A DNA stretch of 64,000 bases. Origin: Schizochytrium sp. TIO01. Lineage: Eukaryota; Protista; Bigyra: Labyrinthulomycetes. This document shows, piece after piece, positions 55,428-63,237 of the stretch; the first letter of the stretch is position 1, and each line of letters begins with the position of its first letter. The notes under the pieces are model-generated. The model did not search any database. It was not told the DNA's origin and saw only the letters and a program-made list of their open reading frames with translations. The position numbers and the translations under genes are program-made. Location: assembly GCA_004764695.1 (NCBI GenBank), contig SMSO01000037.1, forward strand, positions 1,278,747 through 1,342,746. Direction: 5' to 3'.

Positions 55428-55915
55428 AATGTAATGTGATGTAATGTAATGTAATATAATGTAATGTAATGCAATGTAATGCGATGCGATGCAATAATAA
55501 CCAACTCGCTAATGCTGCCTTAGCAGGGGGTAGGTACTAGGCAGTAGGTAGGTAGGCAGGTAGGACTGCCGCTCACAGAGGACAATTAAGGTCGCTGAGC
55601 AGAGCAGTGAATAAGTGAGGGAGAAGAAAGATCAGAAGAAGAAGAAGAAGAAGAAGAAGAAGAAGAAGAAGAGACCTCGAACAGCGCTCGAAGCAAAGCA
55701 CTCTGGGCCTCGCATGCGAAAGGTACCGGCGTACGCCTCTGCGTGCAAAAGAGGCGTCTGCGCAAGAGAAAGGCCCGATTGAAACGAAGACGACACCTTC
55801 ACGATCCGATTCTTTCTTTTCTCTATCGAAGCTTGGAGCGAACTTGAGAATCCATCCTTCATTCATGAGCTTTTCTTTCTTTTATGGCAGAAGAAAGAGA
55901 AAAGGAAAGAAAGAC

Positions 55916-55967
<52 letters not shown>

Positions 55968-56950
55968 TGAACTAACCTGAACTAAGTAAATAAATGGCAC
56001 AGAGTTCTCGTTGACTTGATAACGCCGCGATGAGCTTGCCTTCGACGATACGATACGATTTGGTGATGCTCCAGCGATGATAAATATGGTCGGAGCGCCC
56101 CGGAGTTCTCGCTGCGTGGCCACTCACTTGGTCGGTCAGTCAGTCAGTCAGACATACTCACAGCTTTCGCTCGAAGACCCGCGGTCCCATCAAATGAGCT
56201 CTTCACGGTAGCAGAACTAAAATGGCATGTTTTCTGACGCTTCTTCTTCTTTGTACATTGAGCTCTCTCTCTCTCTCAAGTTCGTTCGTAGGATCGTATA
56301 GGAGAATCAACAAATTGTTTACTCTAAACTTTGTTTATTTTATCCTTGACATTGGCTTCTATGGTGCTACAGAGGCCCTAAGGAGTCCTACACTCATTCC
56401 CTGTTCAAAGAGGATTTCCGCGACACATACATTTTTGAAAGAAAGAAAGAAAGAAAGAGAGAAAGAAAGAAAGAAAGAAAGAAATGGCTATTGAACAGAA
56501 AGCACAATACCATAATTGCTAGCACCGAAAGAGCGGAGGAGCGCGGCGAGGAGGCATCCCTCGAGCCCTCCCTCCGCGGAGACGAGCGCCAGGGCCTGCG
56601 CAGTTGACACCGACCAGACCTCCCTCGAGAGCGAGGTCCACTCGGCCGTCTCCCTCGCGGTGCGGTCTCTTCGCGCATGCGCTCATTGGACTCCTTCCCT
56701 CCATAGAAAAAAAGAGAGAAAGCAAGTCCAAGAAAACTATTGAAAAGAGCTCTCTCTCTCTCTCTCTCATACTGATTAGTAAACCTATACATACGAAGGT
56801 CAATCAAATTCGAAGCCGAAGTCGAAGTCGAACTTGAGCTCAAGCTCAAACCCAAATTTGGACTGGAAGCTCGAGGTTCAAGTCAAAGCCAGACTCACAC
56901 TCGAGGTTGGACTTGGACCCACTGGACGCTCGCGTCGAACTCGCACGGGT
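55428..56950 (+). repeat. Microsatellite-rich region upstream of the 57017 gene
   Basis: (AATGT)n 55428-55492, (GAA)n 55634-55672, (GA)n 55922-55964, (GAAA)n 56437-56483, (CT)n 56750-56768 and a degenerate hexamer array at about 56810-56920. Confidence 0.9.
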
Positions 56951-57016: not shown

Positions 57017-59944
57017 ATGGAGGCGACGTTTCAAGAGAAGTTCAAAGCCAGGTACCAGCGCAACAACAAGCGTAGCGGGCAGAAGAATATCAGATGCTTC
57101 CCTTCATGCACGCCTCGAGCGCACTCATCTAGTGGCTTTTGTGGACAGCAGGTGACTGTGACGGTGACAGGAGTGGACCCAAACTTGCCTTCATCGTGCA
57201 TCTACAGAGCATGGGGCGAGTTTGTGCAGTGTGGAGCGGATGTACCCATGCAACCTGGGCAGAAGATGCCTCTGAGGAATGCGGACATGAAAGAACGGAG
57301 CCGCGCAAACCCTTTAAGGGATTGGGTGCGCGGAGAGGTCTCCGAGGCAGGCCCAGACAAGATCACGGTCATGGTTAACAGGAGTCTGCTGGGGTGGCAC
57401 TACGGGTGGGTATCGAGCAAGCACACCTGTGATGCAATGCACTGCTTCAAGGTTCACCTGTTCGTGCTCGATCAACCCCGTGAAGAACTTTCATATGTAG
57501 GATCTGTGGAGTCACCAAGCTTTCAACTGTTTTCAAGACGTAGACAAGCCATGATGATGGAAGCTCGAGAGGCGGTGAAAACAGAGCCAAAAGCGAACTC
57601 GGAAAAGCGGGACGCTGATCGGGCAGCCCTTGGGTCTGTGATTCTACCACCGCCCAAGAAACGGCTCAACGTGGACTCCGCTATGCAAATTCGCATGCAG
57701 CGTAACCTCTGTCTTGACAGGCTGGTGCGGCTCATGTTGGTGCGAGGAGGATCCGGCACACGAAGCATGTATGATACAGAGATTGCGGGTGCCACTCTAT
57801 TCCATGCGGAGAACGGAATCGGAGGCACGAAGAATAGCATCAAGGCTGAAAGTGCGGGTGCATCAGCAAATAAGAAAACCGGCAATAAGCGGGGCACGAA
57901 CAGTAACACTAAAGCAACTGGAGAGAATGAAAAAAGCAACCCCAATATTGACAATGATTCTAGATCTTCTCTGCAGCAACAGCAGCAGCAGCAACAACAA
58001 CAACAACGCATGGTAGCACCTGTACCTCCAAGAACAGTCATGATTAAACAAGAGGAGCCACCTATCAAGAGCGAGCACCTCCTTGCAGTAGGCCCAAGCG
58101 CATCTTCTGCTCTGGCAACAACCACCTCAGTAATGAACCAGGAAGACCCTTTTGGCGTCGAGTGGTCGGATCTTGATTTTGCTCCTTTTGAATCCTCTAG
58201 TGGGTCCCCTTTCATGGGACTTGGTGGTGATATCCGCGTAGGAGGAAACACGATGCAGGAACAGGAGTTTGACCGCCTTATTGAAGAAGCTCTCTTTGAC
58301 CCACAGATGATGAATGAAGATGACCCCCAACAGGAGACTAAGGCGCGATCCAGGACTGAGTCCGAACCGTCATCCACTATTGATTTTGAGGAAAATGATG
58401 CTTCGTCAAGCAGAGCAAGATCACAACGAAACAAGTCTGATAATGCGGATGATGATGCATCGATGACAGGTAGTACGCCCAAAGCAGGCGTCTCCGGAGA
58501 AGACTCATCTGAGACGACCAAAAAAAGCGGTGTACCTGCTGAGCTTGCTCAAGCTGAATGGGATTCAGGATGCACCTTTACGCGCAAGTTGGAATTCATC
58601 GTCCGGACGCATGGTTCAGAAGCTACTCAACAAAAGGCAGATCATATTATTGACGTTCTGAAGAAGCTACCAGAACGAATGGTAGCTCATAGTACCAACC
58701 GCCCTGACTTTTTGGCCTTCTTTGCGCGCTGGCGCTCCCAGGAAGGTATTCGTCTCTTACGCGAAGAATTTTCGCGGGGAGAAAACGCTACAGCTAATGA
58801 AGAGGACAATATTATGACAAGCTTTGTTCGTGATGAGGACCTCACCGCACAAAACTCATCTTCGACCATTAGCCCGATGCGAAGTATTTATGCTGAAATG
58901 CGCATCATTTATCGACGTGTGATTCTTGATGCACTGACAAGTTTGGGCGGTGACCCTGACGACTTTGAGGAGACCATGGAGTTGTGTGCAAAATATGGTC
59001 TCTTGTTTGTTGACCCGTACTACCCGCCTTCAAAGCGCGTTGCCGCAATGACCCACCTGGAGCTATATAATTCGCTGGACAAGTTCCGTGATCAAGATTT
59101 CGGTAGCTGCGCGGGTGAATTTCGGAATGAGGAACAACGAAATGCCTGGGTGAATGCATATTGGACTGTACGTAAACGCTCATTTCGGCGTCATTTTGTG
59201 AAGGCTGTCTTGAACGAACACGTCGGCTCCAAGCTCCCAGTAGAGGGGCGCACTGTGCCTCCTGAATTTGACGTTTCTGGAACGTGGGTGCAGACTACCA
59301 CGCGTGATGATGCTCGTGAAGCTGCAGCTTGGGGATTACGTGTAGGTGTTGGTCTTGGTGAACTCTCTGCTCGCCTCTTTGAAAATATGTGGAAGCGTCT
59401 GACTTTAAGAATTAATACTGCAGGGCTCCACTTACAGGGTGAGCGTGTGCTTCTCGCTAACCCTGCAAAACTCTTTCTCCTCGATAAAGTTCCTCGCAAA
59501 TATACTGTTTCAAACCCGCTTCCAATGGCTACCTTTGCCGTGGAGCGTACCTATGTTGCATGGCTCGGCTATGAAGACTCTAATGCCTATTTATATCTTG
59601 TTTTCGGAGGTCGAACGCGCAACGCAAACTTTGAAGAGTACTCAAAGCAAGCCAGATTTATTAACGACGATGAAATTCGCCAAGAAGCGGAGCACGTTCC
59701 TAGATATACAGAAATGCGTATTACTAAACGGTTTCGCGTAGCTGAGGACCACGAAACCATGACCATGGATCACAAGATCCATCTCTTTGATGATGCATCT
59801 GCTCCTCATTGGGAGGATACAGACACGATTGCTAGTCTTTTCAAACCTGATCAAAAATCATGTGTCGTGTCTCTGTGTACCAAATATATCAAGGTTTCTG
59901 ATCAAGGTATTGAGGAGGTTCTTGAGCTTTTGGGAGGAAATTAG
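57017..59944 (+). CDS. Putative transcription factor: basic Cys/His N-terminal domain, poly-Q/acidic linker, helical domain and FABP/calycin-like C-terminal domain (paralog A)
   Basis: 975-aa intact ORF, alignable by eye over four blocks to the convergent gene at 60534-63237. NLS-like SRRRQ and PPPKKRL, and a poly-Q tract. The coding call is strong; the function is inference. Confidence 0.85.
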   Translation: MEATFQEKFKARYQRNNKRSGQKNIRCFPSCTPRAHSSSGFCGQQVTVTVTGVDPNLPSSCIYRAWGEFVQCGADVPMQPGQKMPLRNADMKERSRANPLRDWVRGEVSEAGPDKITVMVNRSLLGWHYGWVSSKHTCDAMHCFKVHLFVLDQPREELSYVGSVESPSFQLFSRRRQAMMMEAREAVKTEPKANSEKRDADRAALGSVILPPPKKRLNVDSAMQIRMQRNLCLDRLVRLMLVRGGSGTRSMYDTEIAGATLFHAENGIGGTKNSIKAESAGASANKKTGNKRGTNSNTKATGENEKSNPNIDNDSRSSLQQQQQQQQQQQRMVAPVPPRTVMIKQEEPPIKSEHLLAVGPSASSALATTTSVMNQEDPFGVEWSDLDFAPFESSSGSPFMGLGGDIRVGGNTMQEQEFDRLIEEALFDPQMMNEDDPQQETKARSRTESEPSSTIDFEENDASSSRARSQRNKSDNADDDASMTGSTPKAGVSGEDSSETTKKSGVPAELAQAEWDSGCTFTRKLEFIVRTHGSEATQQKADHIIDVLKKLPERMVAHSTNRPDFLAFFARWRSQEGIRLLREEFSRGENATANEEDNIMTSFVRDEDLTAQNSSSTISPMRSIYAEMRIIYRRVILDALTSLGGDPDDFEETMELCAKYGLLFVDPYYPPSKRVAAMTHLELYNSLDKFRDQDFGSCAGEFRNEEQRNAWVNAYWTVRKRSFRRHFVKAVLNEHVGSKLPVEGRTVPPEFDVSGTWVQTTTRDDAREAAAWGLRVGVGLGELSARLFENMWKRLTLRINTAGLHLQGERVLLANPAKLFLLDKVPRKYTVSNPLPMATFAVERTYVAWLGYEDSNAYLYLVFGGRTRNANFEEYSKQARFINDDEIRQEAEHVPRYTEMRITKRFRVAEDHETMTMDHKIHLFDDASAPHWEDTDTIASLFKPDQKSCVVSLCTKYIKVSDQGIEEVLELLGGN

Positions 59945-60533
59945 GTTAGGACTTTGTTGATATATATATGCATTCTGCTTGAGAAGTTTTTTTCGAGTTT
60001 ACTCGTGATGTTGGATAAATTCGTTCTGCCTTCATAGCTCCTACATTGGTACAAGCGTGTCAAGCACTACAGCAAGAATTGTGAAGCTAGCTTTTGCATA
60101 GCTTGTTTGTTTCCTAAAAGTCATATCTTCTTTTTTTAATTAAAATTTTATTTTTTGAAGGAAAAAAAACTTACCAATCCTTTTTTTTTATCAAAGGCTT
60201 TTGCATATGCAGAACAGGATTTAATTCTATTATGTCATGAGGTCTTTTTCTGTATTATTATATTCTTTTTAAGGGAAAAGGGGGGGAGTAAATGCGATTT
60301 CCTAGCTAGCTAGATTGGGTACCCTATTGATAAGTTTACAAGGTCCTAAATTGCTCTTGAATTTCGGCAGTTAGGGAGGTATTGAATACAGAAAAATGGA
60401 TAAGATACTATAAAATACGAAGCAAGTAATACTATCTTTTTTATTTTAAATAAAAAAGTACAATGAAATGAATTTCCTACTAAGCGACAATTGAAGGAAG
60501 CCACTCGAATGAGGAAATCTCTAGCCGGAAATA

Positions 60534-63237
60534 TTATAATAGGTCCAAAATCATGTCAGTATCGGTTTGATTAAGGTAGCATCGCATAAACCGATGGCGA
60601 AGTTTCATACCAGTAAACTTCACGTCACATTCCTGATTGAGTGTTGCCAATTCAGTTGTATCGTTCATACGAGGGGTAACCGCGGCACGAGGGAAAATAT
60701 GATACCAATCTTCCATCGTCAAATGCTGACGACTGGGTGAAATTAAAAACTTTTTGTGCACGCGCACCTGTGGCACATCGCCAGGTTTCACATGCTTGCG
60801 GAAAAATAAGGAAAGCTTTTGGGCAGCTTCAGTATTGGGCTCTCCATCACGTCTACGAATAGTATCGCAGGCTAACTCTGAAACAGCATCAGAGAAAAGT
60901 GGACCACCAATTACCACATTGATGCAATGGGTGCCATCTGACTCTACCGAAAGCCATCCCACTATCATTTTATCTTGCGAAAGTGGTTGAACACCAGCAT
61001 ACCCAACAACCATTGGCATAGGGGGTCGCCAGCAGTGGGGCTTTCCTTTGAGGTTTGCGACTAAGCGTGGGTCAGCGAGAAGCATCTGTTGTCCTGAGGA
61101 CGTGAAAGTTTCATCAGTGATTGTAACTTCAATTTTGGAAAGCATTGTCGTGAAAACTCGGTTGTAGAAACCGCCCATATTTACACCTGAGCATACGGAG
61201 AGCAATGCACCAAGAGCCTCATTACCTTGTTTGCACATATCTTCCTCAATAGGACCTACGAGAATCCAGGTGCCGTTAATATCCCATCCGGGACTGACAG
61301 GTGCTTCCCGATCGCGCTCAGAAGAAAGGGCACGTGTACGTTGGTCTGTTACGATACGATCGCAAACGATGCGACGCATAATGCCTCGACGTACGACCAT
61401 GAGATCCTTTGCATACTGTCTTTGCTGCTCGTCATTGATAAACTTTCCCTGGCGCGATCCATAATCTTGCTTCTCAAAATTATCCAAAGACCCATAGAGC
61501 TGCATATGGATGAAAGCAGCTGCACGAGGCGAAGGCGGGTAGTATGGGTCTGGGGTTGCCACACCAAAACGTGCTGCGAGGTCCATAGGTTCAATAAAAG
61601 GAGAAAGGCGTTGGCCTGTTTTTGCAATTGCCGCACTCATGATACGACGAAACTGATGACGAAGCATTCCAAAAATACTTGTCTCATGGTCTGGATCGTT
61701 AAGCTTGGTCGGATCCCAAGTACGGTCCTCACGTTCCGGGGTCCAAGCGAAATTAATTTCACGCTCACGTTCAATCTGAGCTTTGAGTCGCTTCAAACCT
61801 TCGGGGCTTGAAAAGCCGCTAACAACACTGTTAAAAGCACTATTATTCTTAGAGAGACGAATTACACAGTCGGAGATCTTCTCAATACCTTCAAGGATCA
61901 TGTCGATACGTAAGGTGTGGTTTGCAAAACTTGACTCGCGCAAAAGGACCTCGCGCAAATGTTGCATGCCTTCACCAATATCTTTGGTCTTCTTGGCATT
62001 TGCAGATCTTGATGACCCTGACGCGCCACCATTAATGTTCTTATCACTCGAACCGGAATCACTTGCGTCAGCGTCAGTACTATTCCTTTGGTTCCCGTTG
62101 CTCATATTCATTGAGGAGGGCTCCTTATCCCACATATGAGGGTCTACAAAATCAGGTCCATTCAACGCTTCGCCGACGTCCATCTCTAGGCCAAGCATAC
62201 CTGAGTGACTTAGATCTTCGCTTGTAACATTTGACGTGCGATCCGAGTCGTCCCATGTTACATCCGACCCGCTAGTATACTGGAAAATAAAGTAGGTTAG
62301 GCGATCAAGAGTACGATTCTTCATGTACTCCGAAGTAAATGACTCCATCAAAGTATCAAGTACTTTTGAATCCATGGCAACAGAGGCAAGAGCTCGGAGA
62401 GGGACCGAGGTTGCATTATTATTACTGCTGCTAATTGCATTTGAACTATGTTCACTTGCGTTTGGGGCATCATGGGGTGTCGAGGAGCCCGAGTTTACGC
62501 CTGATCCTAACTTTGGAGGGCAAGGGGACATCTGGTTCTGGGCTACCAGCAACAGAACCAAAAGTGCTCATTGGGGTCATGCGAGCCTGCTTTGAGGCAA
62601 GCACAGGTGTGGGTGATTGAAGCCCGGCCTGAGTTACTGTTCGTTTCGAAGTAACGGATGCAGTGTCGCATTGCGAAGCCCCGTCCTTATTGACACCACG
62701 CTGCCGCCTTCGACTGTAAACCTGAAAGACAGGGGAAGATACCGAGCCAACGTAGATTAGTTGGTCGCTATCATTCTTGAGCTTAAAAATGTACGCGCGG
62801 AAGCAGTGGTAGCTATCGCAGGAATGCTTGTTTGCGCGCCAGCCATAATGCCAACCTCCAAGCTGCCGATTAAAGGAAACGGATACTTCAGTTCCATCTT
62901 GCAGGCGAACGTCACCGCTCAGCCATGGGAGCTTGGGCAATGAAGCAGTACGCTCCTTTGATTGTGCTTCCTCGAGAGGAATTGTACCGTTCGGCCTCAT
63001 GAGTTCCTTTGTACCACACACAATGAACTCTCCAAAAGACCGGTACTCCCAGCCGGCTTCCAAAGGTGGAAGATCATGAATGGTACATGTGAGCGCAGTA
63101 CCACAGAAGCCACTGTCGCGATGACCTCCTTTTGAACAAATTGGGTAGCATCGCAAGTTCTTTTGTCCGCCAAATTTGTTGTTGCGTTGGTAGCGCTCTT
63201 TAAATTGATCTTTATTATGCCATGTTGCGCGAAGCAT
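60534..63237 (-). CDS. Paralog B of the 57017 gene, split into ORFs 62470-63237 and 60534-62561 by a one-base frame break at ~62520
   Basis: The 255-aa ORF matches the N-terminal domain of paralog A (RYQRNNK..GQKN.RC.P.C, GWHYGW, YVGSV.SP.FQ..SRRRQ). The overlapping 675-aa ORF matches its C-terminal blocks (LDRL, DPYYPPS, GTW). Confidence 0.85.

Follow-up and report, generated by a model that had tools for sequence, protein, structure and literature searches.

Two converging genes share one modular layout

We analysed a 64,000-nucleotide stretch of Schizochytrium sp. TIO01 (contig SMSO01000037.1, positions 1,278,747 to 1,342,746; hereafter the window), part of a 64-Mb genome in 37 contigs, and focused on two converging genes, A and B, whose products join a basic N-terminal domain predicted to resemble Rel and Velvet DNA-binding domains to a C-terminal barrel predicted to have the fold of fatty-acid-binding proteins (FABPs). 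Gene A (57017..59944, plus strand) is a single open reading frame (ORF) of 975 aa, and gene B (60534..63237, minus strand) encodes 900 aa once a surplus base at 62522 is discounted. Both sets of coordinates include the stop codon, and the converging stops are separated by a spacer of 589 bp (59945..60533). Positions below are those of the window, with all gene A features on the plus strand and all gene B features on the minus strand. An initial annotation had described the genes as tail-to-tail paralogs, and both the ORFs and BLASTP confirmed this, with 43% identity between the N-terminal domains (N-domains; 209 aa, E 7e-55) and 27% between the C-terminal regions (515 aa, E 2e-42), a similarity that on sequence grounds is far above chance. 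All five shared blocks that it had listed are present and, as our alignments showed, are kept in orthologs of other species. Their order, from a basic N-domain through a KKR cluster resembling a nuclear localisation signal and a polyglutamine and acidic-aromatic linker to a ligand-type barrel, was likewise as described (alignment, composition).

The public model of gene A, P0001 (885 aa), is 99.7% identical to our ORF from residue 91 onward but begins at Met91, so that window positions 57017-57286 are missing, the N-domain is halved and its YQRNNK segment and CCHC loop are lost. Because every ortholog can be aligned with the complete ORF (start 57017) from residue 3 onward, P0001 looks truncated. 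Gene B is split in the window into two overlapping ORFs (63237-62470, 255 aa; 62561-60534, 675 aa) by a one-base surplus at 62522..62523. We compared Logan contigs of four public runs with the window and found the base at 62522 absent from the contigs of X1 and X6, which are runs of different studies. Deleting it by script yielded one 900-aa ORF with 2 residues different from the database protein P0006 (900 aa), which itself reads through the overlap without a break. Gene B is therefore intact elsewhere, and the frameshift is either an assembly consensus error or a private variant. An intron was considered as the cause and rejected, as the overlap holds no GT..AG of plausible length and the read contigs give a one-base difference with no joint; the read contigs of the public runs contained no splice joints in gene A or gene B. 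Two further bases, at 60270 and 60273 in the intergenic spacer, are omitted in the X1 contig, and these differences, like that at 62522, hint at small assembly indel errors or strain differences.

For both genes, most of the length is covered by contigs of run X17, which end about 110 nt beyond the gene A stop and about 50 nt beyond the gene B stop. They break off at 60054 and resume at 60484, leaving 60055-60483 uncovered, and most of the spacer is covered by the DNA-like run X1. This pattern fits transcription of both genes, without proving it, and full-length MMETSP transcripts exist for relatives; genes A and B are probably expressed.

The N-domain is predicted to adopt a Rel/Velvet/T-box-like fold

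The N-domains of gene A (57017..57550, aa 1-178) and gene B (62698..63237, aa 1-180) are both basic, with an isoelectric point (pI) of 9.4 and net charges of +9 and +10, respectively (pI 9.41 for gene B). AlphaFold2 modelled the domain from a 46-sequence alignment as an all-beta sandwich with a predicted local distance difference test score (pLDDT) of 93 and a predicted template-modelling score (pTM) of 0.88. Foldseek returned weak matches only, to Velvet VeA, the p53 core and STAT5 (E 4e-3 to 2e-2). In a Foldseek-independent structure search of 48,161 representative chains, the top ranks were held by p65, RelA/c-Rel, VeA, VosA, TonEBP and the enhanceosome NF-kB, and the next by one phage tail protein, TBX5, NF-kB1, MYRF, Runx1 and Dictyostelium STAT; a second look at the structure matches added NFAT1, STAT5/6 and Brachyury. 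The nearest solved structures are DNA-binding domains of the Rel/NF-kB, CSL, Velvet, NFAT, T-box and STAT types. Going by the predicted fold, we read the N-domain as a new family in the Rel/Velvet/T-box (p53-like/Rel-homology) structural class, and one that may bind DNA. In its sequence it is outside the Rel, Velvet and T-box families: a 46-sequence N-domain profile found no Rel, Velvet or T-box chain among PDB sequences at E 10, and neither the Rel homology domain (PF00554) or Velvet (PF11754) profile nor the recognition-loop signature matched the N-domain.

Conserved positions cluster in three motifs, namely YQRNNK (57053-57070), a C-x3-C-x4-H-x5-C loop (57095-57142) and GWHYGW (57392-57409). 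The residues invariant or nearly so among the 46 sequences are Y13, R15, N16, N17, K23, R26, C27, P29, C31, H36, C42, G43, W127, Y129, W131 and H142. The Cys/His loop, which follows a polar and basic strand segment, could together with the distal His plausibly form a structural zinc site. The Cys/His putative DNA-binding domain of the initial annotation thus stands with respect to its conserved Cys/His pattern and gains a predicted Rel-like fold, but the model is an Ig-like sandwich and contains no classical zinc finger. In the ESM Atlas, the N-domain adjoins oomycete clusters and, more weakly, LAG1-DNAbind. One of these oomycete clusters is labelled DG1062_N (PF28397, Pfam 38.1; score 0.89, 180/256 features shared), a label that belongs to the cluster only, and a literature search on DG1062 returned nothing relevant. 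Should PF28397 prove identical to the N-domain, an accession exists for it already, as far as we have seen without a known function.

A low-complexity linker carries localisation- and activator-like motifs

Residues 179-509 of gene A form a low-complexity linker of about 300 aa. Its basic cluster PPPKKRLN (57647..57670, aa 211-218) is a candidate nuclear localisation signal, and KKR or KRK clusters occupy the equivalent place in the orthologs P0013, P0004, P0010, P0011, P0008 and P0009. Shortly downstream lies a conserved helix motif, MQRNLCLDRLVRLML (57695..57739, aa 227-241), whose gene B counterpart is KNRTLDRLTYFIF (62283..62321; ORF translation and alignment). The motif is kept as [RK]N.TLDRL..F across 13 orthologs and paralogs in the alignment, and its spacing would fit a leucine-rich export signal. 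A run of 11 glutamines follows (57974..58006, aa 320-330), which was counted as a skipped repeat when read contigs were aligned. The acidic, aromatic-rich part of the linker (58112..58426, aa 366-470) has a net charge of -16 and a pI of 4.05 and contains the motifs EDPFGVEWSDLDFAPFE and EQEFDRLIEEALFDPQMM. Polyglutamine and acidic composition are usual in eukaryotic activators, and the composition of this segment suggests that it may act as an activation domain.

The C-terminal half joins a helical domain to a predicted FABP-fold barrel

We modelled the C-terminal half from a 26-sequence alignment (AlphaFold2 model meeb174da2373; pLDDT 82.9, pTM 0.79). The gene A helical domain (58568..59224, aa 518-736) was predicted as helices H9-227, mostly at pLDDT 80-95, and includes the DPYYPPS motif (59012-59032); residues S623, P670, P671 and F702 are invariant in the alignment. 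Its gene B equivalent (61302..61967) was aligned to gene A aa 521-745 by BLASTP and in the multiple alignment. In the model, the helical domain packs tightly on the barrel. It had no structural match, having been searched only as part of the C-terminal module.

The barrel spans 59249..59896 in gene A (aa 745-960), with G755-x-W757 in strand A, and was recovered in gene B by profile search (60537..61304, including the C-terminal MILDLL tail; E 8.5e-72). One strand, a helix-turn-helix and nine more strands follow one another in the FABP order, with two helical insertions in addition; the model thereby has the 10-stranded antiparallel beta barrel and the helix-turn-helix between strands A and B that characterise intracellular lipid-binding proteins (iLBPs). 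The top 49 Foldseek matches of the C-terminal model were all iLBPs, including myelin P2, FABP3/4, I-FABP, CRABP-II and REP1-NXSQ, at probability 1.00 and target-normalised template-modelling scores of 0.56-0.71. An independent VIA search ranked C. elegans LBP-8 first (Z 12.9; 137/138 residues, root-mean-square deviation 2.9), followed by CRBP-IV (12.5), SAHS (11.7), UnaG (11.4), Drosophila FABP (11.3), I-FABP (11.2), a bile-acid-binding protein (11.0), Manduca FABP (10.9), As-p18 (10.6) and nanoKAZ (10.3), with other calycins (nitrobindin/THAP4, DUF3598, Rv2717c) at 7.0 or below. Given this step in Z and the full-length coverage, the FABP fold assignment is firm for a predicted model. A lead from the ESM Atlas agrees, pointing to NanoLuc and liver-FABP clusters. 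The FABP-like barrel proposed in the initial annotation was thus recovered by AlphaFold2, Foldseek and VIA alike.

At the sequence level, the barrel is 8-14% identical to iLBPs and highly divergent among its own paralogs (17-25% identity). Across 60 barrel sequences, G755 is kept in all 60 and W757 in 56 (93%), D823 and P834 are also conserved, and no conserved His or Cys was found. R901, in predicted strand H, is R or K in 88% of these barrels, and K959, in predicted strand J, in 83%; the latter lies two residues past an aromatic position, [YF]957-x-[KR]959. FABP4 and CRABP2 hold the ligand carboxylate by a strand H Arg and a strand J R-x-Y, and the resemblance of R901 and [YF]957-x-[KR]959 to this clamp is suggestive.

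In four paralogs the barrel is compact, at about 150 aa, near the canonical FABP size (L022:2686-3165 minus, L031:7557-8129 plus, L026:6487-7080 plus, L023:5877-6443 plus). These paralogs have none of the helical insertions seen in A and B, most also lack the LDLL tail, and they may be better suited to a first structure or ligand screen.

The gene A protein ends in a helix and tail (..IEEVLELLGGN; 59900..59941, model helix 453-464) with the consensus [DE]x[IL]L[DE]LL. A terminal hydrophobic-xx-LL helix had been annotated for both genes, and it is indeed conserved in the A/B subfamily. However, model confidence falls to pLDDT 52-66 over the helix (aa 962-973), and the tail is confined to that subfamily and absent from most barrel-bearing paralogs.

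The pair belongs to a large, anciently diverged family

We found about 19 N-domain loci in the source genome. A HMMER scan of 1.84 billion cluster representatives with the N-domain gave 753 at E <=0.001 and 325 at <=1e-10. Named members came from the thraustochytrids Hondaea fermentalgiana, Mucochytrium quahogii and Thraustochytrium sp. LLF1b and from the oomycetes Saprolegnia, Achlya, Aphanomyces, Thraustotheca, Globisporangium and Pythium. They are all named 'hypothetical' or 'uncharacterized' except P0030, whose name refers to its Ku80 part, and P0172 ('Transmembrane protein'). We scanned genes A and B, 26 relatives, 8 barrels, 10 additional paralogs from the same genome and 35 long relatives against Pfam, and no family emerged apart from Myb with AP2 below threshold (P0002), Ku (P0030) and NmrA/NAD_binding_10 (one unnamed relative). 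Precomputed Pfam domains among the relatives were confined to those of P0002, whole-protein sequence searches of the PDB gave nothing meaningful, and literature searches returned nothing on the family. The statement of the initial annotation that no named family has this architecture accordingly held for the Pfam copy searched and for the source names.

One member, P0201, is filed under the chytrid fungus Batrachochytrium salamandrivorans (BASA81_014030), the other named members all being stramenopiles; it could reflect contamination of the chytrid assembly or a wider family range.

The co-occurrence of N-domain and barrel, which had been proposed as a check on the layout, proved regular. A barrel profile found exactly 8 copies in the source genome, each C-terminal in an N-domain gene, and no free-standing barrel there. 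Of the 210 N-domain proteins collected, 69 have a barrel, in every case C-terminal to the N-domain, and these make up 69 of the 94 proteins of at least 550 aa. The barrel was found always as the C-terminal domain of proteins of 600-1200 aa. None of the 10 named oomycete members has it, and its named carriers are thraustochytrids plus P0030, an NCBI protein without a stated organism. With named carriers among thraustochytrids and barrel-less named oomycetes, the fusion appears to be an elaboration, made within labyrinthulomycetes, of an N-domain family spread more widely among stramenopiles.

Other arrangements also occur. P0002 (1331 aa) combines an N-domain with Myb repeats and the below-threshold AP2 match, and P0030 (1869 aa, CAK8998408.1) an N-domain and barrel with Ku70/80 domains; each may be either a genuine fusion or the product of merged gene models. 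Two or three tandem N-domains, with no barrel, are found in P0097 (Thraustotheca clavata OQS03278.1, 1471 aa), P0096 and P0145, a layout that by analogy resembles multi-module DNA-binding proteins.

In the maximum-likelihood tree, built from 20 full-length members, gene A clusters with P0013, P0010, P0004 and P0005 (support 100/99), gene B with P0011 (97/90) and a third paralog, from beyond the window, with P0020 (100/100). The notion that A and B are a private pair is therefore contradicted, both by the roughly 19 N-domain genes in the genome and by the placement of the two in different supported clades with orthologs elsewhere. The A-like P0010 comes from the same transcriptome as P0007 (MMETSP0098, labelled Mucochytrium quahogii), which falls in a weakly resolved group of seven that includes gene B. 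This co-occurrence indicates a duplication older than the divergence of the thraustochytrid genera, and A and B, as judged from the tree, are anciently diverged and not a recent tandem pair. The third paralog lies on the same contig about 17 kb past the window end (G000:C36:1359587-1362478; locus L021:4456-7347, plus strand), so that three of the eight barrel-bearing genes fall within about 27 kb. Its open frame of 964 aa (928 aa in the database model P0031) encodes N-domain, helical domain and barrel.

Proposed function and alternatives

Weighing the predicted models together, we give roughly even credence to the reading that A and B are members of an uncharacterised family of stramenopile proteins, probably transcription regulators, whose barrel senses a lipid-like ligand. 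Its parts differ in strength: we consider it rather probable that a family member is a transcription factor, somewhat short of even that it is a ligand-controlled one, and doubtful that the ligand is specifically a lipid. In such a protein, the N-domain would bind DNA, probably through the N-terminal Y-x-R-N-N-K...K-N-L-R segment and the zinc-stabilised loop, the KKR cluster would take the protein into the nucleus, and the polyglutamine and acidic linker would recruit the transcription machinery and activate transcription. The barrel would hold a small hydrophobic ligand; our first guess is a fatty acid or another lipid with a carboxylate, given the conserved basic residues of predicted strands H and J. 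Through the attached helical domain, occupancy of the barrel might then shift activity, partners or nucleo-cytoplasmic distribution, so that a single polypeptide would take on the tasks that in animals are shared out between a nuclear receptor and an FABP-type chaperone.

Several observations weigh against this proposal. All the structural evidence consists of predicted models. The barrel has no Pfam match even at E 10 (8 barrels), nor do the whole proteins; its profile matched no FABP or lipocalin among PDB sequences, and the PROSITE FABP signature PS00214 occurs in 0 of the 60 barrels, G-x-W being the sole shared feature. The N-domain likewise has no Pfam match at E 1, and neither sequence nor profile searches linked it to the Rel, Velvet or T-box families. 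FABP-fold proteins have also been turned to other ends, among them a luciferase subunit, SAHS and the bilirubin-binding UnaG, so the fold does not imply a lipid ligand. The Myb/AP2 fusion of P0002 is a single gene model and perhaps a merge of neighbouring genes, and X17 is an RNA run by guess only.

The same regulators might instead use the barrel and its helical partner as a protein-protein module for dimerisation or cofactor docking, with no small-molecule ligand, much as the second Ig domain of Rel proteins serves dimerisation and cofactor docking. The tight packing of the helical domain on the barrel (pTM 0.79), the two helical insertions in the gene A barrel, the low identity among paralogous barrels and the presence among the structure matches of FABP folds that serve no lipid function (SAHS, the luciferase subunit nanoKAZ and a protein of hepatitis E virus) would all suit such a module, which we regard as unlikely on balance. 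Redox or pigment sensing has been proposed for THAP4-nitrobindin (PMC6275384), and a barrel that senses heme, bilin or another tetrapyrrole would make the proteins redox or pigment sensors. That appears very unlikely, as true fatty-acid, retinoid and bile-acid binders hold the top structure ranks and the lack of a conserved His or Cys among the 60 barrels argues against axial heme ligation.

If the N-domain were a generic Ig-like interaction or cargo module, the proteins could be cytoplasmic lipid-handling adaptors. We think this quite unlikely, since the unbiased structure search was topped almost wholly by transcription-factor domains and the strongly basic N-domain is followed by an NLS-like cluster and then by polyglutamine and acidic activator-type regions; moreover, P0002 pairs the N-domain with Myb and possibly AP2, and some relatives have two or three tandem N-domains, as is often the case for DNA-binding modules. 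Finally, the frameshift at 62522 that splits gene B in the window raises the question of a decaying pseudogene, the pair then being a duplication relic without present function. This we consider extremely improbable: the surplus base is absent from two other read sets and from P0006, no other break was seen in gene B, its orthologs form a supported clade with it, and X17 contigs extend over most of the gene.

Comparison with known systems

In shape, the N-domain is nearest to the Rel/p53-like domains of NF-kB p52/p65, NFAT/TonEBP, CSL/RBPJ (N-terminal), VeA/VosA, T-box, STAT, Runt and MYRF/NDT80 proteins. Unlike Rel-class factors, it lacks family signatures such as RxxRxRYxCEG, has motifs of its own (YQRNNK, the CCHC loop and GWHYGW) and is not followed by a second IPT/TIG dimerisation domain. 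The barrel shares its predicted fold with the iLBPs (FABPs, CRABP/CRBP, C. elegans LBP-8, myelin P2), which are usually regarded as an animal family, but differs in not being free-standing, in the two helical insertions and preceding helical domain of the A/B subfamily, and in its stramenopile host.

With nuclear receptors, the likeness is one of logic only: as in those receptors, a DNA-binding domain and a flexible region would be joined to a lipophilic-ligand pocket and a C-terminal amphipathic helix. A and B lack both the C4 zinc finger and the helical-sandwich ligand-binding domain, their putative ligand module being a beta barrel; neither PF00105 nor PF00104 matched in Pfam, and the models are a beta-sandwich and a beta-barrel. 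In animals, FABP-fold chaperones bring lipids into the nucleus to receptors. Compared with these relays (CRABP2-RAR, FABP4-PPARgamma, LBP-8-NHR-49/80), sensor and DNA binder would here be one molecule.

The architecture had been put forward as independently assembled and as matching no recognised named family, but the design has a precedent in human THAP4, where a DNA-binding domain is coupled with a calycin-type nitrobindin barrel (PMC6275384). THAP4 is the closest such case, although the folds differ at both ends. THAP4 is an animal protein with a THAP DNA-binding fold and a heme-binding barrel of a subclass without the FABP helix-turn-helix lid, and it lacks the intervening helical domain of A and B, which in turn do not carry the combination of PF05485 and nitrobindin/DUF1794 that defines THAP4-like proteins. 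We rate A and B as known folds in an undescribed family and architecture.

Implications

A wider proposal is that Labyrinthulomycetes, independently of animals, evolved a one-polypeptide lipid-gated transcription factor from an FABP barrel, a novel helical domain and a Rel/Velvet-like domain, the 8 paralogs forming a small 'receptor' family for different ligands; we offer this as speculation, with the odds against it. As a free-standing lipid chaperone, the FABP fold is generally regarded as specific to animals. Were the proposal true, it would provide a second, independent route to direct lipid control of transcription, with a Rel-like binder and an FABP barrel in place of a zinc finger and a helical pocket, and would take the sensor use of the FABP fold beyond animals. 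It would also identify a large anonymous regulator family, comprising 753 or more cluster representatives and, in the source genome, about 19 genes. Oomycetes include major plant and fish pathogens, and thraustochytrids are industrial producers of docosahexaenoic acid. In oil-accumulating protists, levels of fatty acids or lipids would directly set gene expression, and the regulators would be handles for studying the control of lipid accumulation in thraustochytrids. Even without ligand gating, a new DNA-binding domain of the Rel/Velvet class in stramenopiles would be relevant to the evolutionary history of the fold.

Repeats upstream of gene A

The region upstream of gene A (55428-56484) is rich in microsatellites, comprising (AATGT)x10.8 at 55428-55481, (AGA)x13 at 55634-55672, a 57-bp AG-rich tract at 55908-55964 (detected at periods 4, 6 and 10) and (GAAA)x12 at 56437-56484. 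These repeats explain several spurious low-complexity entries among the listed ORFs.

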